A DNA stretch of 64,000 nt from Podarcis bocagei (lineage: Eukaryota): NCBI GenBank assembly GCA_964188305.1, contig OZ076888.1; one strand, given 5' to 3'. This document shows, piece after piece, positions 6,256 through 36,688 of this stretch. A program made the position numbers and the translations under genes. The notes under the pieces were generated by a model that ran no database searches, had not been told where the DNA came from, and was given only the letters and a program-made list of their open reading frames with translations. Numbering within the stretch: the stretch's first letter is position 1; every line of letters begins with the position of its first letter.

Positions 6256-7978
6256 GCTAAATTATCTATAGACAAATTGTAAGAATTGTAAGGTAGCCAT
6301 ACTGTAAGTCCCAGGCTGACACATATCTAGTCTGCATCTAGGTTAGAATTGCTAGGTTGGGCTGGCAATCTGTTGCTGCAAAAACAAGAAAGTGTCTTGT
6401 GGCCAGTGGCATAGCAGGGGTTGCCAGCGCTTGGGGCTACACAGAGGAGGATGGGTGGGAGAGAGGGAAATGGATGGAGTATACATGCACATTCAGCTGC
6501 CTAATGGTGTCATGCCACCCAGGAGATTGCAGCCACAGAGATACGAAAAGAAGAGCCATTCCATTGTCTGGAGAGGTCACTTCCTGGTTTGCATGGAGAA
6601 GCTATTTTCAACACAGCCCAGCAATGGAAGCATGCAGCTGTACTGAGGCAGCACCAGCGATTGAAATTTTGCATCCCTAACAATTTTGTGCCTGGGGCAA
6701 TGTTATTCCTATGTCGGTTCCACAAAATGGATAGGTCAAGAGGATAGGAATGGGGGCTTCATGAGAACACTGCAGTGCATGCTCATAAGCCGCTCTTGTT
6801 CATTCCAAATTCCCATTCATTTCAATTGTCTGATGGATTGTGACTAATGTTTGTTTTGTGTTTTGAAGCCACTATGGCCAGCTTTTTAAAAGTAAGATGT
6901 TTCCAACTAGATTATTCTTTTAGGGAACGCTGTGCTATACACACATTCCTTTCTGCCTTGCCTAAGAGTGCTCCTGGGAATCTAGACCAACCAGGACTTC
7001 TAAAAGTGGCATAACCAGAGGCCTTGAACAGAATGTGCACCTTCTGAGCTCCTGCTGTTTGCGGCTCTGCCTCCTTTTCTTTGCCTGACATTGTTTAATG
7101 ATTTGATGCCGAAGCCAAACAGAATAGCTGAACCAAACAAGAGAAATGAAAGTGCGCCTTGATTGATACTGACAGATTTCCAGGTCATGCAATGTCATAC
7201 TCAACGAGGAGAAAATGTGAAGTTATGCCAGGGCATTTCAGATACATTGGATAAGAGAAAAGCTAAAACAGAAGTATTCCTTCTATTTCTTAGACTTTAA
7301 AGTGGTTTAGTTAAAATGTAGCACATCATAAAAGAGACTAAGATGAATAGAAACTGATATATCACACTGAATTAAATGGGACTTACTCCTAGGTAAATGT
7401 GCATTGATGATTGCAGCCTCAAACTCTGGGGGAATACAGTGTAGTGCTATGAAAAGCAGTTCAGCTTGCCAGACAGAATGATCCCCTCTCTCCTCACCTT
7501 GTCTGCTGTTCTGGGGGTTCTCCCAACAGCACCCCAGAGCCAAATTTGAGGGGCATGGCAGCTTATGGGGGGAGGAGGGGGAGTTAAGCCCTACTGCAGT
7601 AGCCCAAGTCCTTGCATGGGCTTCTGCTAGCAGGACTCATTAGTTGAGCCTGGCTCTCCGTTTCAAGAAATTAAGAAAAGGAATCTATTTTTGTGCAGAA
7701 CACATTCAAAGTATGAGCTCCTTCTCAGCCCTCACTATATCTGACCAAACGGGTCAGTTTTATCATACTACTATATGGTACTAATCCAATCACTGTTCTG
7801 TTAGGAATGTCAAAATATTTCTAGTTGTTTCAAATTTGCATCTGGAAGTCAAACTCTTCCCACTGTGATCTCATATCCCCTCTCATACCAAATCCCAAGC
7901 CTTACAATATCACTAACTCCCTTCTGTTGCTAAGACCTGCGTGTGAAGTCTTTACCCAATTCCTTTGCCTCCTTGGTC

Positions 7979-10766: not shown

Positions 10767-10870
10767 TGCAAACTGATATAGAAATGTGGAGAACTGAACT
10801 TAGGATTTGAAAAATGAGAAACTGACTGTGAGTGAACCTGAAAATGACCTATTTGAATAGCACTCGTCTA
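10378..10870 (+). mobile_element. Non-autonomous DNA-transposon-like repeat (TAGGGATG start), contains an (AAT)n run at 10716-10765
   Basis: Shares aaac.gaaacacag..atcctttgaa...aattttgcaatg...ggggaaattgcttt with copies at 33003, 44235 and 45639; class is inferred. Confidence 0.7.
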
Positions 10871-10875
10871 GCCCC

Positions 10876-11242
10876 GGGATGCAGGTGGCGCTGTGGGTTA
10901 AACCACAGAGCCTAGGACTTGCCGATCAAAAGGCTGGCGGTTCGAATCCCCGCAATGGGGTGAGCTCCCATTGCTCGGTCCCTGCTCCTGCCAACATAGC
11001 AGTTCGAAAGCACGTCAAAGTGCAAGTAGATAAATAGGTACCATTCCAGCGGGAAGGTAAACGGCATTTCCATGCACTGCTCTGGTTCACCAGAAGTGGC
11101 TTAGTCATGCTGGCACATGACCTGGAAGCTGTATGCCGGCTCCCTCGGCCAATAAAGCGAGATGAGCGCCGCAACCCCAGAGTCGGTCACGACTGGACCT
11201 AATAGTCAGGGGTCCCTTTACAATCAACAACAATCAACCTTA
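10876..11242 (+). mobile_element. Sauria SINE (Squam1), full length
   Basis: Head gggatgcaggtggcgctgtgggttaaacc, box B ggttcgaatcc, typical body and 3' end; 10-bp TSD gtctagcccc (10866-10875, 11243-11252). Confidence 0.95.
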
Positions 11243-13940: not shown

Positions 13941-14900
13941 ACTATAATGACCATTATGAAGCAAATGAGTTCAAAACTATTTCTCAAGGCTCATCCACTC
14001 TTACCTTTCGCCCCACACTTTCTAGGCACAGGCCTGTGCTTTCCTGGTTTGTTTCTGAGAGCACCCCGCTCCCCACCGCTTTCCCCAAGAAAACCCAGTT
14101 TTTACTGCTGAATTGGAACAAATTGCCATTTGTTCCGATTCAGTAGTAAATAGTGGGCTTTTGCCGGGGCAACCCCTCCCCCCCCAAAAAAAAGCAAGAG
14201 GCGGCGGGGGGGGGAGGTTGTCAGACCTGGAAACCCCAGATCTTTGCCTAGAAAGCATGGGGCAAAAGATAAGTGTGGATGAGCTTTCACTTTGTGTATC
14301 TTACTCTACCTTTTAAAGCTATGTTCACCCACAGTTTAAAAGGAGGGCGGAGCTTGTATCCAATGCTCTGGATTTGATTTTGAGGGTGCACATGGGTCTG
14401 GAAGGGACAGGAGAGAGGAAGCCCCTGGCCTGAGCAGAGTTGCAGGTTTGGATACAGCCCAATGTCCTTCTTTATTAACCTTCCTTTCTTGTAAAGGGCT
14501 GTGTTCACTGAAGAAGGATGTTCTATGCAGCTGTTTTGCATTCCAACACAAGTGAGACAGAATGGAATCTGCTCCTCACCTTCTCCGCAGTTCTGCTTGC
14601 TTTGCATTCAGGCACAATGGGCCAGCTGTGAGCTGCTACCCTTAAGTTCAACCTCATCTTCAGTACCCTGCAATGTCTCTCAAGCTTCCACTGACCATCC
14701 CATGCAGAACCCTGGGATGAAACCAATAAGGTATGCCAAAAGTTATTTGGTGTAAGGGCTGTGCAATCACTTTGGATCAGATTCAGATGTGAAATAAATC
14801 AGGGTGGTTCATAGCCAGGTAAAATGAAGTGGAAGGCAACAGAAGCTGGGACAAGGCAGCTAGAACCAAAGTGCTTAATGAAGTTTCAGTTGTATTTTGT

Positions 14901-16725
14901 TTTTTTGTTTTTTTTAAATATTTTTATTGGTTTTTCACCTTTTATGAATACATAACACACACAGAAAAGACAAAAGACGAAAACATGTATAATTTCAGAA
15001 AATCCTACTTTCCTAACCTTGTTCCTTAACTTCCCCCCACCCCCCTTCATGCATCCCAATTCCCATAATTATGTCAGCAAATTGGTATTTCTCCTCTTAA
15101 CCATCTTAATATTACCTCTTTTATTTAAAAAAAAAAAGTTTTTCTAAGTTGGACTCAAATTCCCTTCCATCGATTTCCCATTTTGTCTTAGGTAAAAGTC
15201 AAATTAACTAAACCCAAAAGTCCTGAGTGTTTTTAACGTTCTATTCTTCCCTCCCTCCCATCCCCGGTTTTCGTCCCTTCCCCAGTACATGTCCAAAATA
15301 ACAGTTCTTAGCCTGGATTCCTCACGTCCGAGGCTTTCAAGTCTCTTTCAGTCCCTCTCCGCCGGTCTTGTTGGTAGTCCTTTATATTGGTCGTCGAATC
15401 TTGAAGGAATTCTGTCCCCATCAAACCAGGTTCTCTTCCCACAAGGGCATTTGAAAACAACTGCTGCAAAAGTTCCTCAGGCCATGCATCTTCAAAGTCA
15501 GAGTGAAGGCCCCAATCATATTTCTTCTTTATTTTGAGTTCCTGTATTCCATATACTCCCGGGGCCTCCTCCTTCGTCTTTTGCATCTTTCGCAGATTTG
15601 TAATCAATGTAATCCAAAAGTCTCCTTGCTTATATTCCACTGGTGTAAGCTTCTGGTTGGTACTTTCCATCTTTGCTTTCTCTTCTCCTTGTTTAGTCTC
15701 CTCCACTTCTTGAGTTATCATTTCCGATTCAGCTGCAGATTCTTTCTCATTCAGGTCCTCAATACATTCAGCAGAGCTGCTTGTTCCAGAAGTCAAGGTC
15801 ATGAGTTGTTTATTCATAGCCAGACTCTGCTCTTGTAAGATTCCCACCAAATGAAACATTCTTTCGATTTCCACTAGTAACTTTCCATCCACAGCCATTG
15901 TAATGTCACAGAGTTCCCCCTAGAGGGAATCTGGTTACTTAATAATCTTTCTCCAATAATCCTCTGACTTGTTGTTGTTACTTTGTTTCCAACAATTTTA
16001 GTTCAATTTTAACTGATTTTAATCCAGAGGGATCTTAGATGACAATTTTTCAACTTTAAACTGTCCGTTTGACAGCTTTGACAGCTGTCAAACTCCGCAT
16101 TCCTCTTCCATAAGCTCAAATACAGGACGCTCCCGGGCCCGGGAGGGGGGGTTACATACAACAGAAAGAAGGCTTCTAAAATTCCACTCTTTCACTCCAG
16201 CTCAAAATTTCTTTTTGCCAAATCTTGGAAGTTAATCTCTTTTTTAACTCACCCCACAAAGGGTAGGCTCTCCAGCTTAGTTCTTCTATAGTTGCTTTAG
16301 ATCGTCTGCAAGAGGGGGGGTGCGGACTTCCTTTTAGCACACACCCCGGTCGTCTCGAATTCACAGGAAAATATTCTTAAAGTCCAATTTCATCTTACTC
16401 ATGGGTTATTCTTTTTCAGTCCGAATTTCAAGGAAGGAAGTCAGCTCTCTCCAGTCATGGCTCGCGGCTCCGCTCAACCGAGGTAGCGATCGACTCTCAG
16501 CGCCACGCCACCCTCCGTACCCTCTCCGCAGCCTTTAAAAAGGCTCTTCGTGGGTCGGGGGGCGCTTAAGGCGCCCACCGAGTCTTCTAGTCCGCAGGCT
16601 TCAGCGCCTGCGGTTTCTAAGGGTCTCCGCGTCGCCGGCGCAGCAAGACCCGTCCTCAGTTGAGCCGATTCCCTCCGCAGCTCGGAGGGAATCCGCCATT
16701 CCCAGATCGCGCCAACCCGGAAGTC
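14901..16725 (-). mobile_element. Full-length ~1.8-kb non-autonomous L1-type (HAL1-like) retroelement, copy 1
   Basis: 15-bp TSD tcagttgtattttgt (14886-14900, 16726-16740); poly(A) tail with AATAAA on the minus strand; CpG-rich 5' end starting GACTTCCGGGTTGGCGC; no RT or endonuclease; homologous to 21228-22974. Confidence 0.9.
15308..15898 (-). CDS. Element-encoded 196-aa E/K-rich ORF (possibly an ORF1p-like remnant)
   Basis: Longest ORF in the track, in the element's sense orientation; GKLL (N-terminal) and DxRxPG (C-terminal) recur in broken frames of copy 2. Confidence 0.45.
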   Translation of the reverse strand: MAVDGKLLVEIERMFHLVGILQEQSLAMNKQLMTLTSGTSSSAECIEDLNEKESAAESEMITQEVEETKQGEEKAKMESTNQKLTPVEYKQGDFWITLITNLRKMQKTKEEAPGVYGIQELKIKKKYDWGLHSDFEDAWPEELLQQLFSNALVGREPGLMGTEFLQDSTTNIKDYQQDRRRGTERDLKASDVRNPG

Positions 16726-16926
16726 TCAGTTGTATTTTGTGTAATGATTTTCTGCCTTGCCTATGTCCAGGAAGGGGCAGAAAAGGGTGACTGAGTGCTA
16801 GTCAGCACTGTAATTGACAAGTCTATCTGTCAATGGAATAATGCCTTACATTGCCTGCATGATGCAAATATCCATATCAAATTTTGCAGAGATTTTACCA
16901 AAGGGCACCTCTGTATTCCCTATGAG

Positions 16927-19035: not shown

Positions 19036-21227
19036 CTGATGAAGCTGAATTGGGAGGTGGGAGACATCCAGAGGAGGCAAAGGGAAGGACTCCTTCATAC
19101 AGCACATAGTTAAACTATGAAATTTGCTCCCACAACACCATGGGTTGTACCCAACGCTCTGAAAGCAGCCACAGAACTTCCCATTCCATGCTCTCCCCAC
19201 CCACCGCACTCCCAGATTTGACCCCCTGGAGCTGATTTTGCAAATGCACGGGACACTGCAAAGGAGGTCAGAGGGAAGTTCCATTCTGCAGCCACTAGTC
19301 TTTTGTGCTAGTAGGACAGGGACATTGGAAACCAGTGGCCTGCTGTCAGTGGGCCTGGGGGACTAGGCTGATCTGCTAAATGTCCCCCTGGTATTTCCTT
19401 CCCAAATCCTGGGAAGCTTCTGCCCAGCTTAGGGAGGGAGGCGCAATGCTCACACATGCAACATTGAGATGTCAGCCCCCGCCAATCGCCCTTGCAAGCT
19501 GGCACCTCTGGCCCCAACTGTTCCCCTATGAAAAATTTCACCACATGCCACTCTTGGGGACCAAGAGACAGGGATTCTCCAGCTGTTATTCCTGCAGGTC
19601 CAGAACAAGTGGCACAGTCCAAAGGATGGATATCCTAGGTATGGATTTGTTTTTGACATTTCAGGAAAAGTCCTCCCCCTTTATTTCAGTTCGGCAATAT
19701 AAATAAAATACTTTGTAGTGTGGCTCACACCACTAAGCACAGAGACTGTGAAAGGTGCCAGATAAGAAATTTCAATCTGTATATAAAGAGTTACAGAGGG
19801 ATAACACGATAAAAATCTGACCAAAGACTTCAATTAGGCATCTTCAGTAATCCCAAGCACATCAGAAATAAAAAATATCATCTAGGAGAAATATATAATT
19901 AGCAGAGACCAGGAGAGAAATAGCCTTCATCAAACACCACAATGCGCACAGTTCAAAAGCTGAATATTCAAATTAAAATCCCAAATTCGTTCAGTGACCT
20001 GCCTCTTTGCAGATCAATGGAAACAGGGGCACACATCTCCTTTGATACATCTCTGCTATGTAAAGTGTCCTTTAACTAAACAGGGTCAAAAACCATAAAT
20101 GATTACTGGAAATGATTTGACAACTGCACAGCTACATTCATTTTAAATAGGCATTAATTCATTTAATAGAGTTGGAAGGGGGAACTGTTCTGATCGCTGT
20201 AAAGTGGGACAGAGAAAGGAAGGAAGCAGATGGCATTTTACAGCTAACATTCACAGGAAAGTCGGTGTTCTTGGGGAGAGTCATTATTATCGCTGTCCTT
20301 ACTGTGGCACCCCCAGGAATTACTTGGTATATGAAATTCCATGGCTGTTTGGTTGCTTCAGGTTTACCAGTAAGACTAACCTCACTCAAAAAACACTCCC
20401 AGTGAATCAATAGCTGTCACTACCTACTGGGTTCAAGAGCATAAGGAGAGAATGTGTGTTTGTAGAGAGAGGGGGGAGGGGAAGAGAAATGTTTTCTAGT
20501 TTTGCACCTATTCATATACATTGGCACACGCACATTTTATGCATGTCCACTGTTGTGCACTTTTTGGGGACTGGAGTGAATGTTTTTCCTCTTTTTTGGC
20601 AATGCATTGGACACCTTAAGCTAACTCAATCAGTTTCCAGTTTCTTACATGCAAAGATGCCTAGAGTGAAGAGGATGACCTTTTTCAGTCTGTGGGCTGC
20701 AGTCGCTTCTGGAAAGCTGTATGAGGGCTTGCCAGTGGTGGGCAGGTCCAAAGGCAAAAGTGTGCACAAACAGATACAAAAGTGAGCAGAACTCTTCATC
20801 TGGATTTTGCCTTGGTACAGAAGGCTACTTTCTACCCAGACTTACACGCCCTCAAGTTGCACCAACTCCTAGGGGGCAGAGGTATCTTCAGCCCCCACAA
20901 AATATTCTGGCACAGGGCCAGACCCCCTTAATATTGAAGGGGCAGAGGAAGCCAATCATTGAGGTGAGTGCCACACAGTCCAGTGGCTGGCTCCTCCTGA
21001 GCATAGAGAGGAAGCTGTGCCACAACTGGGCTCTGTGCTTGACCACCTCCCGACAATGTGACGTCATGCACGCCAGCCCTTCCAATCTTGGGCACAAGAT
21101 GGCCCCTCTGCACATGCCTCTATACCCTCTATTCAGGCAAGCAAGAGGCATTATCCAAGTTCAAGGGCACATTGCATGAAAAGAGGGTGCAAAGCAAAGT
21201 TAGTGAGAGCTGTGGGGCCAGATTTTG

Positions 21228-22974
21228 TTGTTGTTTTTTTAATCATATTTATTAAAATTTCCAATATTGACAGAATAGAAAAAATAGAAAAGATAAAGAA
21301 AAGAAAGAAAAAGAAAGACCAATTTTAAACCCTTATTTTCATAACTTTCTTTCTGGGACTCCCTCCTTCCCCTCCCGACTGTATTCCCCTTTCCCTAAGT
21401 TGGTTCCACAAGTTCTCATTCCCAATTTAAGCCTAATATGTTGTGCCTATTAGCCAATTTAAATTACAATCTTAACATCACTCCTCATCTTTAACAAAAT
21501 AGAAAAAAGATTTTTCCCCCAAGATCTACCCCGTTTCCTTCCACGAATTCCCCCTTTTTTTCAAAACATGTTAAATCACAATACCAAAGTTATATAGAAA
21601 GATAAAAGATAAAAGATAGAAGAAGATTCAAAAAGTTGGGTACATAGCCTTTGGATTCTAGAATTCCCCCTCCCTTCCCCGGTTTAGATTCCCCATGTCC
21701 ATCAGTCTGTATGTTGTCGGCCTGGAGGTCTCAAGTCCACAGCCAAATTTTCCTCAAACCATCTTGCCGGTTTTCTTTAAATTTACTTGTTTTGATGCTG
21801 TTTAACTTCAAAAATCCAGTCTAATAGAGGCCTTTAATTTCCTTTGGTCATAGTTGCTCCTCCCATTGTTCTTTCCGTGGCGTAGTTGGTCCTTTGCTCT
21901 TTTATTTCTTACTTTCTCAGGTTTCTATCTTGTTCAGCTGCAAAACCATTCTTATTCCGAAATCTAGTATCTCTACAGAGGTTTGTTATTCAGGAACAAA
22001 AACTTACGTCCAGTTCCTACCTTGCTTCAATAGAAAAATTCTATTGTGTTGTCACCTCTGTAGACAAAACAATATTTCAGTTTAGCTGCTTTCCCAGGAG
22101 ATAAGTCCTGTACCCATCCCGGAGTAGTTTTCCACATACGCCACTTGTAATGTCCCAAAGCCCCTCTAGGGGGGTTGCAGTAACTTTGTATCCTCTATTC
22201 CAAAAGTCAAGTTGTTGTTTCTTTTTTCCCCCGACATTTTGTATCCATATTTATGTCCAATTGTAACAAAATTTACCAGCAAAATACTTATAACAAAGTC
22301 CTCTTTATGTTCTCAAGATTTGACAGCTACTTTGACAGCTGTCAAATTCTCCATCTCTCTCCGCCAGGTTCTCTGAATCGCCCCGGTTCCCAGGGGGGGG
22401 GTTGCCTTTTCCCTCTCACCCTCGACTTTTCTCCTCCAGCACAATTCTTGTAGTATCCCATCGTGGAATTGATATTTTTTGTCAGCAATAAGCTTCTGAA
22501 TCGATCTTGGTTTCTCAGTCCTTGTTTTAGCATGTTTACAATCAGGAAGGGGACTGACTTCCTTTTTAGATCCCCCCCGCTCGTGCCGAATCCGAAAAAA
22601 AATTCCTTTTTTTTCTCCTTTTATACCCGGTTACCCAATTACTCACGGGTTGTTGTTAAATAGTCGAATTTTCAATAGAAGAAGCCAGCGCTCTCCGACG
22701 AATGGCATGCGGCTGCGCTCGGCAGGGGAAGCGATAGACTCACAGCACCACGCCGCTCCCCGGCACCCGATCCGTAGCCTTTAAAAAGGCTCCTTCACGA
22801 GTCGGGAGGGCGCTAACGGTACCAGCCGAGTCCCCATGTCCACGGGCTCCGTGCCCGTGGTTTTTAAGGGTCCCCGCGTCGCCGGCGCGGTAGGACCCAG
22901 CCCCTGCCGAGCAGACTCCCTCCGGAGCTCGGAGGGAGTCCGCCATTCAGCGATGGCGCCAACCCGGAAGTCCC
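21228..22974 (-). mobile_element. Full-length ~1.75-kb non-autonomous L1-type (HAL1-like) retroelement, copy 2
   Basis: 18-bp TSD ctgtggggccagattttg (21210-21227, 22975-22992); poly(A) with AATAAA; 5' end GGGACTTCCGGGTTGGCGCC homologous to copy 1; ORF region disrupted. Confidence 0.9.
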
Positions 22975-23027
22975 CTGTGGGGCCAGATTTTGCCCATGGA
23001 ACCTAGGTTCTCATTTGTGATCTAGAG

Positions 23028-27485: not shown

Positions 27486-27836
27486 AAAGGTAAAGTGACC
27501 CCTGACCATTAGGTCCAGTCGTAAACGACTCTGGGGTTGCAGTGCTCATCTCACTTTACTGGCCAAGGGAGCTGGTGTACAGCTTCTGGGTCATGTGGCC
27601 AGCATGACTAAGCTGCTTCTAGTGAACCAGAGCAGTGCACAGAAATGCCATTTACCTTCCTGCCGGAGCGGTACCTATTTATCTACTTGCACTTTGACGT
27701 GCTTTCGAACTGCTAGGTTGGCAGGAGCAGGGACCGAGCAACGGGAGCTCACCCTGTCGTGGGGATTCGAACCACCGACCTTCTGATCGGCAAGTCCTAG
27801 GCTCTGTGGTTTAGACCACAACGCCACCTGTGTTCC
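27486..27836 (-). mobile_element. Sauria SINE (Squam1), full length
   Basis: Reverse complement of the 10876 element; aaaggtaaag tail; degenerate TSD att(a/c)aataca. Confidence 0.95.
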
Positions 27837-29203
27837 ACGATTCAATACATACTTGATAGGAAATATCCTAGTTCTAGCTAACTAAGGTGGAGATATGAAG
27901 AACTCAGTAGGAGAGATGCTAAAACGATGTCTCTTCTTCCAAGGTGAAGATGAAGAAAAAGAGGAAGTAGGAAACCCTAAAATTATCAATCTAACATGGA
28001 AGGAAGAACAATAGGTTCAGTGCCTCCTTCTCACATGTTGGTTATTGACCATCTGCAGTCCAAAGGGCTGTGCAGAATACTATTGTGCCAGCAAGTTTCC
28101 TGGCAAAAACCAGCCAGGTTTGAATCAGAGATCCACACTGTGTGGTAATAAATATAAGTGGCAAATTCTGCTACCTTAACTTTCTGTTCTTAGTTTGTTG
28201 AGTCTGTTCTTCCCACCTTCTGGAATTCTGCCTATTCTGGAGATCTAGGATTTTGTTCAAGAAACTGTCTGAAGTCTTGGTCTTCTCTTGATTTGTCTTG
28301 GGTTCTGGGACATTGGTCTGCAAGTTTTGCTGGGCATGTTGTGGATTTGTGATTACCTGAGGCTCTCATGAAAGGCTTAGAGGATTGGCCAATCAGGAAG
28401 CCAGAACTTTATTATCTCACTCCCCTAAGAAGAAAAGAACAGCAACAGGAAATGACTCTACCCAAATAGACCCAAACCCTATCCAGAGAGGGGCTTTGCT
28501 GCTGAAATTAGATCTAGTCCATGGATCTGGACCTGAGGTCCACCAGCATGCTCCTGAAAAAGTTATATCTTTTGATTGTGCCATTGACTTTAAAATGCTA
28601 TTCATACACGTGTCGAACACTAAAAAAGTAAAAAGGTATAATGCTCTTTTCAGGCATAAAGCCTGAAATTTCTGTATGGTGAGAGGGAGATTCTGAAAAT
28701 CTGGTCCTTTATATATTGTTCCTGAGTGGGGCACCTAGAAGTGACAGGTACACACACCTGAGTAAAGCGCATGCCCCACCTGCTGCAGATGACTCCTACC
28801 CCTTCTTCATTCATACCATCTTCCCTGATGACACTGCCGTTTCTGCATCTTTCAATAAAAGGCACGGCTCTTTTAAAAAAATGAAACAAACAAACTCCTT
28901 TAGTCCCAAAGGAAGGCTGTGCGCATGTATGAGCCTGGGGAAGGAAGAAAAGCTTGCTGTTATGTGAAAGGGACACAGCAGGGAGATTAAGATCTCTATC
29001 GGAGCTTGTGGCAGCGATGATTAGAGTGCATTAGGGCTCTCTCGGTGTTGACAAACACTGCCCCAATTAGGAATTAGTTCAGCATGGCATCTGATAGCTC
29101 TGCCACTGTTGACCTGCTTAATAGGCTGGCCTTTTCCTCCCCTTCATTTGCTTGTCTGTCTGTGGCCCAGGACAAAAGCTCTGGAAAAAAACACTCCTCT
29201 CTC

Positions 29204-36058: not shown

Positions 36059-36333
36059 TAACTCTGCACAAGAATTACTGTTACCTCAGTGGGACTTCAC
36101 CCATTCCCCCTGCGAGTGCCCTGCACCATTCCCAAATCTGTTTCAGAGGATTGGAGGAACCCCTAGAACACATACGGCAGGAGGAAAGAGGGGAAAGTCC
36201 CATTGTGCTGGCAGTAATCTTTGTACCAATGAGACCCTGTTCGAAGCAATCCAGTAGAAGGCATCCTCCTCATTTCTTTGTTGTCCCACCTTTTACAGTG
36301 GTATTCTTAAACAACATCTATCACTTAGCACCT

Positions 36334-36688
36334 GGGACGCGGGTGGTGCTGTGGGTTAAACCACAGAGCCTAGGACTTGCTGATCAGAAAGTCGGCGGTT
36401 CGAATCCCCGCGACGGGGTGAGCTCCTGTTGCTCGATCCCTGCTCCTGCCAACCTAGCAGTTCGAAAGCACGCAGTGCAAGTAGATAAGTAGGTACCGCT
36501 CTGGCAGGAAGGTAAACAGGGTTTCCGTGCACTGCTCTAGTTTGCCAGAAGCAGCTTAGTCATGCTGGCCACATGACCCGGAAACTGTACACCAGCTCCC
36601 TCGGCCAATAAAGCGAGATGCGAGATGAGCGCCGCAACCCCAGAGTCGGTCACGACTGGACCTAATGGTCAGAGGTCCCTTTACCTTT
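36334..36688 (+). mobile_element. Sauria SINE (Squam1), full length
   Basis: 13-bp TSD tatcacttagcac (36319-36331, 36689-36701); ccctttaccttt tail. Confidence 0.96.

Follow-up and report, generated by a model that had tools for sequence, protein, structure and literature searches.

Comparison of seven copies of a lizard retroelement indicates that L1-type elements open with an RNA part that has so far gone undescribed. As judged from the aligned sequences, what is kept through evolution in element nt 7-287 is the pairing and not the sequence, and it is very probable that the fold formed by this stretch is under selection at the RNA level. Two of the copies are present in the window, i.e. the whole stretch of 64,000 nucleotides of Podarcis bocagei DNA that was analysed (Table 1). 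Five extra copies were obtained from Podarcis lilfordi and from a Logan contig. The seven copies share 63-100% identity and represent about four lineages from a few lacertid sources. A preliminary description of the same DNA had proposed that selection keeps a multibranch fold on the element strand; this proposal is borne out by the covariation across the seven copies and by the asymmetry between G.U and A.C pairs.

Element copies and their reading frames

Both window copies are poly(A) retroelements of ~1.8 kb located between target-site duplications (TSDs), with A-rich 3' tails and an AATAAA poly(A) signal. The TSDs of both open with the letters AAAAT, an A-rich insertion site. Neither element contains a reverse transcriptase (RT) ORF, and the ORF of copy 2 is degenerate. 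No partner L1 that could supply ORF2p in trans was seen in the DNA analysed. We read them as RT-less elements of L1 type, inserted through target-primed reverse transcription (TPRT). All seven copies begin at the same base, with ACTTCCGGG, and in the alignment their 5' flanks are mutually unrelated. Untemplated G's at a 5' junction are a signature attributed to the reverse transcription of a cap; the extra G's at the junctions of the two window copies thus suggest that the element transcript is capped. Other routes to further copies were also considered. Used as protein queries, the sense upstream ORF gave one match and the antisense ORF none; homologues of the main ORF led, in seven cases, only to Logan contigs of ~1 kb that end before the 5' domain, and a scan of metagenome contigs with a 23-base pattern returned 0 matches.

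Table 1. Positions of the elements, of their junctions and of the helices (H1-H11) of the structured domain in the window
Feature	Position	Strand	Remark
Retroelement copy 1, whole	14901..16724	-	A-rich tail, AATAAA, TSD
Copy 1 TSD, 15 bp	14886-14900 and 16726-16740		exact
Copy 1 5' junction	16725		one untemplated G
196-aa ORF, copy 1	15308..15898	-	family-conserved
GGAAGTCC	16324..16331	-	complementary to 5'-terminal GGACUUCC
Structured RNA domain, copy 1 (element nt 7-287)	16438..16718	-	H1-H11, 95 base pairs
Long arm H7-H11	16487..16588	-	apex hairpin AGCCUU/AAGGCU
H6 hairpin	16592..16613	-	
H5 hairpin	16621..16651	-	invariant loop GGCGA
H4 5' strand, 12-bp long-range helix	16654..16665 with 16472-16483	-	in copy 2, 22901-22912 with 22717-22728
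H3, 11-bp hairpin	16667..16693	-	in copy 2, 22914-22940
AATGGCGGA within H2 region	16692..16700	-	YY1 core GCCAT on opposite strand; upstream AUG at nt 26
H2	16695-16706 with 16451-16461	-	weakest helix
H1 5' strand GGGUUGGCGC	16709..16718	-	closing helix; pairs with 16438-16447
Unpaired 5'-terminal ACUUCC	16719..16724	-	with the next GG, invariant ACTTCCGG, ETS-like box
Retroelement copy 2, whole	21228..22971	-	element start at 22971
Copy 2 TSD, 18 bp	21210-21227 and 22975-22992		exact
Copy 2 5' junction	22972-22974		three untemplated G's
Structured domain, copy 2	22682..22965	-	own MFE fold

The 196-aa ORF has no detectable homology to L1 ORF1p, which is laid out as a coiled coil, an RRM and a CTD, or to other proteins. 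Pfam gave no match (Transposase_22 included), an exhaustive HMMER profile search of 1.84 billion proteins returned 10 representatives, all members of the family, and nothing usable was found in the ESM Atlas or among PDB sequences. Its AlphaFold2 model is helical, with a pLDDT of 47. The seventh copy is adjoined by an ORF (positions 6274-7080 of the sequence that carries this copy, not of the window) with the motif H-WW-CP...W...LLG, which may be that of the L1 ORF2 C-terminus; a phmmer search against PDB did not confirm the L1 origin of this ORF. We also considered splicing of a GTGAGTA donor (nt ~325) to CCCTCTAG (followed by G) before the main ORF. Two raw RNA-seq runs contained no such joints and the supposed acceptor is a palindrome, CCCTCTAGRGGG; the idea is not supported.

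Covariation and sense-strand constraint

The MFE folds of copies 1 and 2 have the same architecture, with z-scores of -5.2 and -5.5 against dinucleotide shuffles, and each of the five further copies, folded alone, gives the same 11-helix multibranch structure. The predicted stability ranges from -143 to -165 kcal/mol. Between copies 1 and 2, eight pairs are doubly changed with pairing kept. The preliminary description had reported one compensated pair in the 11-bp hairpin, four in the long-range 12-bp helix and two in a further hairpin (CCGCAGGC/GCCUGCGG versus CCACGGGC/GCCCGUGG), and all of these were found again at the positions given, together with its stem GGGUCU/AGACCC (versus GGGUCC/GGACCC) and its AGCCUU/AAGGCU apex. 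The pairing that it had drawn between the 5' GGGUUGGCGC and the 3' end of the domain also holds, and goes through four G.U wobbles.

Across the seven copies, the four wobbles of H1 are invariant and are accompanied by two covarying pairs. Compensatory changes are present in 6 of the 12 pairs of H4, one of which occurs as four pair types. In H6, 3 of 7 pairs covary and none is broken according to the model-fitted count (4 of 8 when counted by eye in the alignment). The most diverged copy has its apex hairpin swapped for CCCCC/GGGGG. The invariant loop of H5 is a candidate pseudoknot partner of a YGCY at the H7/H4 junction. Further downstream, a GGAAGTC motif is found at nt 389-440 in 7/7 copies.

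Covariation was counted on several alignments. With MAFFT only, i.e. in an alignment not fitted to the structure, compensatory double changes occur in 17 of the 95 pairs, compared to 9.3±1.8 in shuffles (0 of 500 reach the observed value) and 2-5 in slid registers, and 93.8% of the cells are paired, compared to 40-48% in controls. Of the seven-copy alignments, one has 23 covarying pairs out of 91, and the model-fitted one 26 out of 95 with 94.6% of the cells paired; slid registers give 2-7 compensatory pairs when the MAFFT and model-fitted counts are taken together. The full double change is required in at least 21 pairs. About 10 involve transversions; the types seen among covarying pairs are GC/CG, AU/UA and UA/GC, and some of the changes create CpGs. 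Identity between subfamilies is 60-82% in the domain versus 35-58% downstream, so that the domain is the best-conserved module of the element.

The strand on which this constraint acts was then considered. In folding energy the sense strand is ahead of the antisense strand by 8-21 kcal/mol, yet both have similar z-scores; the thermodynamic strand test is thus uninformative, and the count of G.U versus A.C was used instead. Pair cells contain 75 G.U/U.G and 15 A.C/C.A. Similarly, one-sided departures from the commonest Watson-Crick pair lead to G.U in 52 cases and to A.C in 14. This excess of G.U indicates a constraint on the sense RNA, and neither on a DNA palindrome nor on the antisense strand.

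Promoter-like features and possible role of the fold

The domain has a GC content of 0.63 and a CpG o/e of ~1.0, against 0.4 and 0.5 for the rest of the element. The ETS-like box ACTTCCGG (+1 to +8) is invariant in 7/7 copies. A YY1-core box (GCCAT) is located at +26 to +30: its core ATGGC is present in 7/7 copies, within AATGGCGGA at nt 25-33 in six of them and within AATGGCAGA in the most diverged one. In human L1, the YY1 core GCCAT sets the transcription initiation site (PMC11602158). Given the CpG-island-like block, the invariant ACTTCCGG and the YY1-core box, the domain stretch probably doubles as an internal Pol II promoter, a role suggested by these motifs and by analogy with mammalian L1, and one that the preliminary description had overlooked. 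With regard to transcription from the element's own promoter, RNA-seq reads of a related species span the domain; they lie on the element in either orientation, show no sharp start at +1, and in many cases cross the 5' boundary into heterogeneous flanks (read-through). The invariance of the ETS-like and YY1-core boxes makes it probable that some of the conservation is at the DNA level, notably that of the AUGGC which the preliminary description had placed in the pairing with the 3' end of the domain. For these invariant boxes, sequence alone does not separate DNA-level from RNA-level constraint.

We propose that the stretch would serve an L1-type 5' UTR as its capped 5'-terminal module, found here on two ~1.8-kb RT-less elements presumably inserted by TPRT, and that it would work at two levels. 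As DNA, it would be the promoter block that every new copy must bring along; as sense RNA, its nt 7-287 are predicted to form the closed 11-helix multibranch, in which pairing has survived at least 26 double substitutions. The fold would be a cis-acting platform in the retrotransposition cycle, binding a protein and/or shielding the 5' end. The protein bound could come from a partner L1 or from the host, or be the 196-aa product that the element itself encodes. In this way, transcripts that are full-length and carry the promoter would be favoured in stabilisation, packaging and copying. We hold this explanation as a whole (promoter, fold and platform) with moderate confidence, and its last part, in which the fold acts as an RNP, mobilisation or 5'-protection platform rather than in translation, only tentatively. 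SVA, a non-autonomous element transcribed by Pol II, offers a precedent for a 5' module that promotes trans-mobilisation: when its hexamer/Alu-like region is deleted, mobilisation is attenuated (PMC3287187). Against a platform, a fold this stable at 6 nt from the cap should hinder scanning ribosomes as well as reverse transcriptase.

The stem symmetry could also come from a CpG-island promoter with no function at the RNA level, through palindromic factor sites, inverted-repeat gene conversion or paired CpG decay. The region is indeed CpG-rich with invariant factor-like boxes, and two fast CpG transitions in palindromic stems can mimic a C-G to U-A compensation. However, the G.U/A.C asymmetry, seen in both counts, is unexpected for duplex DNA or gene conversion, the latter being the origin that the preliminary description had itself named as the alternative, and the invariant wobbles of H1 go in the same direction. 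Moreover, the covarying pairs with transversions go beyond CpG decay, some changes making CpGs, the six covarying positions of the 12-bp helix join strands 170 nt apart, and the intact TSDs of both window copies indicate little decay since insertion. We consider this explanation very improbable. The main rival to the platform reading is control of translation: acting as an IRES, a shunt platform or a brake, the cap-proximal fold and the upstream AUG would govern how the downstream ORF is translated or, in a variant, the fold would hold the RNA untranslated, the RNA then serving as template. Such control would fit the stability of the fold and its start at 6 nt from the cap, the upstream AUG (nt 25/26) that is invariant in 7/7 copies, and the position of the main ORF, which is preceded by several AUGs and starts at a distance of ~825 nt from the cap; PMC3592465 describes, for mouse L1, IRESs upstream of both ORFs. 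It fits less well with the ~530 nt that separate the end of the domain from the ORF, and with copy 2, which keeps the fold despite its degenerate ORF. The upstream ORF (5-68 codons, not conserved, its AUG being part of both a helix and the YY1 core) also has a geometry unlike the short-ORF-then-stem layout of known shunts. We regard translation control as unlikely.

A self-cleaving ribozyme or processing element setting the 5' end, as in R2, RTE and L1Tc elements, would account for the identical start nucleotide of all copies, for the 5' end being drawn into a closed structured domain, and for the reads crossing the 5' boundary, which imply that co-transcripts exist. It appears extremely improbable: Rfam contains no matching ribozyme family, either at its gathering threshold or at E<=10, nt 1-6 are unpaired whereas the P1 helix of HDV-like ribozymes, set in a nested double pseudoknot, starts at +1, and a ribozyme-cut 5'-OH end would be without the cap suggested by the untemplated G's (1-3 in the two window copies). 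The start, with its ETS-like and YY1-core boxes, is in keeping with a defined site of transcription initiation. The processing element put forward in the preliminary description is thus unlikely given these G's, the unpaired conserved 5' hexamer and the lack of a ribozyme match. Capture of the module from a host Pol II gene, with its ancestral fold kept, is an origin compatible with the other explanations; we consider it distinctly improbable. The source would be a non-coding RNA with a structure of its own or else the first exon of a housekeeping gene (ETS box, YY1/Kozak ATG, splice donor). The latter is brought to mind by the succession of ACTTCCGG at the 5' end, ATGGCGG at +26 and, in 5/7 copies, GTGAGTA at nt 319-327, and replacement of the 5' UTR is known from L1 evolution, but there is no Rfam family match, the upstream reading frame is not conserved, the RNA reads contain no splice joints and no host gene was found as the source.

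The choice of template by L1 is generally attributed to cis-preference and to the poly(A) tail and, to our knowledge, the 5' UTRs of L1 are viewed as promoters that evolve fast and have no conserved RNA architecture. With a fold of 290 nt at the capped end, maintained by compensatory evolution across diverged subfamilies and in non-autonomous derivatives, an L1-type element would possess a defined cis-element at the RNA level. The competition of non-autonomous elements for the L1 machinery could then be studied through it, and one sequence would be seen to serve simultaneously as promoter DNA and as structured RNA. A more specific possibility, which we find rather doubtful, is that lacertid L1-type elements have evolved a psi-like 5' RNA recognition (packaging/mobilisation) domain within the L1 clade. 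If true, template choice would depend on this defined fold at the capped end, and it would explain why RT-less derivatives keep the module while the downstream part diverges or is deleted.

Comparison with known systems

Rfam was searched with the whole window at the gathering threshold and with 16350-16780 at E<=10; the only matches were to (unstructured) lncRNA models and did not exceed chance level. These searches rule out a piece of known ribozyme, SRP, snRNA or rRNA, and the check for a known family suggested by the preliminary description is negative. HDV-type models gave no match at E<=10. Homology to 7SL helices 2-5 was not found either, with no Metazoa_SRP or related match in Rfam. 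For the Alu-domain-like capture of ribosomes or ORF2p suggested in the preliminary description, Rfam showed no SRP/Alu similarity.

The overall organization is that of HAL1 (half-L1): RT-less elements of ~1.8 kb that carry a single ORF besides an L1-type 5' UTR, end in a poly(A) tail and are flanked by TSDs of L1 type. It differs by the 196-aa ORF, in which no homology to L1 ORF1p was detectable. The 5' hexamer/Alu-like region of SVA and the Alu (7SL) domain are non-coding 5' modules kept by a non-autonomous family mobilised by L1, as the lizard module would be; in contrast to these, the lizard module has no 7SL/SRP similarity. The module may also be the 5' end of autonomous L1s (one mosaic copy), in which case it need not be a parasite-specific device.

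R2, a non-LTR element, likewise has a structured 5' RNA, a few hundred nt long, in which structure is conserved more than sequence. R2 is co-transcribed with rRNA and frees itself by self-cleavage, and its 5' RNA is bound by the R2 protein. This structured RNA is also reported to be kept by non-autonomous derivatives (PMC3414825). The lizard elements differ from R2 by the capped-transcript signature at the junctions of the two window copies, by the absence of an HDV-type fold, and by being L1-type and poly(A)-dependent.

Finally, the module shares several features with the 5' UTR of mammalian L1: it is 5'-terminal and CpG-rich, needs its own Pol II promoter, and has a YY1 core near the start and an upstream AUG. 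In human L1 a YY1 box is located near +13 to +21, and a YY1 motif is present in mouse Tf monomers. We know of no covariation-supported RNA fold described for mammalian L1 5' UTRs, and found none in the literature searched. There is no sequence homology between the two, and in the lizard module it is the RNA pairing that is conserved.

Two complete elements and further copies of the domain

BLAST identified 16395-16725 and 22639-22972 (76% identity) as the only mutually similar parts of the window around these positions. Each stretch forms the 5' end of a complete minus-strand retroelement, about 1.8 kb long; the two elements, copy 1 and copy 2, are listed with their coordinates in the table. 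In each copy the TSD begins with AAAAT and is separated from the first base of the element by G's that have no equivalent at the 3' TSD (one in copy 1, three in copy 2). Such untemplated G's, where they occur at the junctions of full-length L1s, are ascribed to the cap having been reverse-transcribed. A reverse-transcriptase ORF is absent from both copies, and no relation of the 196-aa ORF of copy 1, either to L1 ORF1p or to another family, was detected.

Further copies of the domain, the structured RNA of about 290 nt at the 5' end of these elements, were reached via proteins: ORF homologues led to two 20-kb pieces of Podarcis lilfordi (L001 and L003), and a match to the upstream ORF led to a Logan contig (L004). 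Five more complete domains were located in them using BLAST, nhmmer and a covariance model of the domain (R1). The seven domains are 63-100% identical, represent about four lineages, and share an identical first base (ACTTCCGGG) preceded by unrelated 5' flanks.

Coordinates of the elements, the intact ORF and the additional 5' domains
Feature	Position	Strand	Remarks
Copy 1	14901-16724	-	A-rich tail; AATAAA; exact 15-bp TSD at 14886-14900 and 16726-16740
Copy 2	21228-22971	-	Exact 18-bp TSD at 21210-21227 and 22975-22992
196-aa ORF of copy 1	15308-15898	-	Intact; homologues in Podarcis lilfordi and Logan contigs
Extra domain	L001 9151-9450		
Extra domain	L001 7501-7808		
Extra domain	L003 8930-9233		
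Extra domain	L003 5349-5659		
Extra domain	L004 93-400		

Other features of these regions were recorded. In Podarcis lilfordi, L001 7501-9150 and 9151-11000 are elements of different subfamilies arranged head to tail, and the window likewise carries two family elements within 6 kb: local clustering or nesting of the family is possible. A palindrome, CCCTCTAGRGGG, is conserved about 25 nt 5' of the ORF start codon (window about 15920-15935, minus strand, as well as L001, L002 and L006). Three copies of two subfamilies share another, TTTGACAGCTGTCAAAG, of TGIF/MEIS type (TGACAGCTGTCA), at nt ~620-640 (window about 16080-16100 and about 22330-22350, both minus; L004 nt 617). The window also contains a repeat of ~350 bp that is probably a SINE, in three copies sharing 86-89% identity (10869-11221, 27490-27837 and 36326-36688), and the repeat pairs 42874-43390/50083-50614 and 23125-23369/50940-51184.

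Selection on the sense-strand RNA fold

All helices listed in the preliminary description were recovered in place, as were its compensated pairs: between copy 1 and copy 2, eight pairs are doubly changed with pairing kept (1 + 4 + 2 + 1, as it had counted). Independent folding of the two copies arrives at one common architecture, closed and multibranched (z of -5.2 and -5.5 relative to dinucleotide shuffles). In each of the seven copies the MFE fold contains the outer helices H1/H2, three hairpins (H3, H5 and H6), the long-range helix H4 and the long arm H7-H11. RNAalifold was run on a MAFFT alignment of six copies, unfitted to structure, and predicted 95 pairs, 17 of them with compensatory double changes. 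In this alignment 93.8% of cells are paired in register vs 40-48% with the 3' partners slid by 1-3 columns; the 17 covarying pairs compare with 2-5 in slid registers and 9.3±1.8 in shuffles, none of 500 shuffles reaching 17. With the seventh, most diverged copy added, RNAalifold finds compensatory changes in 23 of 91 pairs. A model-fitted alignment yields 26 covarying pairs out of 95 and 94.6% of cells paired; as that alignment is biased towards structure, the more cautious estimate is the one from MAFFT. On the tree of the seven copies, parsimony requires a complete double change in at least 21 pairs.

Individual helices illustrate these changes. In H4, whose strands are 170 nt apart, 6 of 12 positions covary, and AU, UA, GC and UG are all seen at one pair. 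Three of the seven counted pairs of H6 covary and none is broken (model-fitted count; 4 of 8 by eye in the printed alignment), and in the oldest copy the apex hairpin AGCCUU/AAGGCU is rebuilt as CCCCC/GGGGG. Variable columns make up 48% of paired vs 59% of unpaired positions: the conserved property is the pairing, not the letters.

In CpG-rich stems, decay of paired CpGs could mimic C-G to U-A compensation, but transversions at about ten covarying pairs, together with some changes that generate CpGs, show it to be insufficient as a source of the pattern. The strand and level of the constraint are indicated by the wobble pairs. In register, 75 cells are G.U/U.G vs 15 A.C/C.A, compared with 81-116 vs 46-95 in slid registers, where the two classes are between roughly equal and two-fold different. 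One-sided departures from the commonest Watson-Crick pair lead to G.U in 52 cases, to A.C in 14 and to other mismatches in 11. Of the four G.U pairs in the closing helix H1, three are unchanged in every one of the seven copies and the fourth is G-C in a single copy. Such an asymmetry is not what a palindrome in duplex DNA, gene conversion between inverted repeats or an antisense RNA would produce, and the constraint is therefore on sense-strand RNA, on whose fold selection acts; energy z-scores by themselves do not separate the sense from the antisense strand. The maintained multibranch RNA fold proposed from the first two copies thus holds, with covariation above controls and G.U/A.C asymmetry, and is well supported given so few copies.

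In all seven copies the invariant H5 loop, GGCG, can base-pair with YGCY where H7 meets H4 (28/28 cells; columns 91-94 with 250-253 of the seven-copy alignment, window about 16631-16634 with 16486-16489). The candidate pseudoknot so formed shows only C/U changes opposite G, without double covariation.

Promoter-like sequence and transcription

The domain has a GC content of 0.63 and a CpG observed/expected ratio of about 1.0 (~30 CpGs in 300 nt), vs 0.40 and 0.5 in the rest of the element. Its first eight bases, ACTTCCGG (+1 to +8), are invariant in the seven copies, and their complement, CCGGAAGT, corresponds to the high-affinity ETS consensus. At +25 to +33, AATGGCGGA is conserved (AATGGCAGA in one copy, core ATGGC invariant) and contains the YY1 core motif GCCAT. 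YY1 requires this core for binding in mouse L1; in the human element, YY1 "primarily dictates where transcription initiates" (PMC11602158). Since a retroelement landing in arbitrary flanks needs an internal promoter, the domain is, from its sequence, an obvious candidate for one. The AUGGC pairing noted in the preliminary description is present; its reading at the RNA level is ambiguous, as the box may be a DNA-constrained YY1 core. It lies within H2, the least well paired helix (85-88%). Although its AUG is invariant, the frame that follows varies between 5 and 68 codons in length and thus encodes no conserved peptide. Diverged subfamilies are 60-82% identical over the first 300 nt vs 35-58%, near alignment noise, downstream: the module is therefore either under the strongest constraint in the family or a cassette that subfamilies exchange.

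A GGAAGTC(C) motif is conserved 60-110 nt past the domain (window 16324-16331, minus; nt 389-440 in 7/7 copies). It exactly complements the 5'-terminal (G)GACUUCC and, being invariant, is uninformative for covariation; the 3' UTRs of copy 1 and L003a carry a similar GGGGAAGT. RNA pairing, either long-range or end-to-end, could account for the motif, as could a further site of ETS type.

Two raw RNA-seq runs of a related species were compared, at 80% likeness, with region 14880-16760, as were a set of genomic contigs and a set of contigs that is probably RNA. Among the genomic contigs the family is plentiful (4,072 pieces matched, whose summed depth is not a copy number), with no obvious 5'-end depletion of these pieces over the region. 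RNA reads span the whole element in both mate orientations, and no place where many molecules begin stands out. In each run 37-44 reads extend beyond 16725 into heterogeneous sequence, indicating read-through or host transcripts. Transcription over the element is thus observed, with its own +1 as a putative initiation site. No splice joints were found in the two raw runs. Immediately 3' of the domain, a good 5' splice-site or U1-binding sequence, CCCGTGAGTA, is conserved (22640-22646, minus; nt 319-327 in 5/7 copies), copy 1 having ATGAGTA at 16396-16402. Within the domain, mate orientation flips over two bins (16518-16706) in both runs, first mates on the minus strand being 2-3 times more frequent, and neighbouring bins favour plus. 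The flip could stem from an antisense transcript or promoter within the 5' UTR, or from the way in which the hairpins affect read mapping.

Identity and possible role of the module

Rfam gave no family match, either at gathering score over the window or at E<=10 over the region, and no relation to 7SL. An HDV-type ribozyme is unlikely: nt 1-6 are unpaired, no model matches, and the extra untemplated G's speak for capping of the 5' end. The domain is classed as a structured RNA, putatively cis-acting, in a retrotransposon UTR; to our knowledge, none of this kind has been described for L1-type elements. An ORF 3' of the most diverged domain (L003 5349), at L003 6274-7080 (+), is mosaic-like, joining a coiled-coil-like N-terminal part to a segment with an H-WW-CP...W...LLG motif of the kind seen at the C-terminus of L1 ORF2. 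This C-terminal half may derive from L1 ORF2, an origin unconfirmed by Pfam or by phmmer against PDB sequences. If such leads, including GGACTTCC as the putative start of L1s in Podarcis bocagei, hold, the module is part of the L1 5' UTR proper, from which the non-autonomous derivatives inherited it.

Purifying selection acts on a sense-strand RNA fold at the very 5' terminus of a poly(A) transcript that was inserted by TPRT and was probably capped, and the fold is co-extensive with a CpG island bearing the ETS-like and YY1-core boxes. We propose that the domain would act as an internal promoter in DNA and as a cis-acting platform of the retrotransposition cycle in RNA. Only full-length copies would found new lineages, and a protein-binding or 5'-end-protecting module would be selected at exactly the 5' end; its candidate binders are proteins of the partner L1, a host factor and the 196-aa product. 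The main rival is translation control by the fold, as an IRES, shunt or brake. Cap-proximal stability and the invariant upstream AUG fit this role, but the 530-nt gap between domain and ORF, and retention of the fold in a copy with a degenerate ORF, fit it poorly. For the proposed platform, two known systems offer a comparable mode of action: deletion of the 5' region of SVA lowers its trans-mobilisation (PMC3287187), and R2 elements retain 5' RNA structures, which also persist in their non-autonomous derivatives (PMC3414825).
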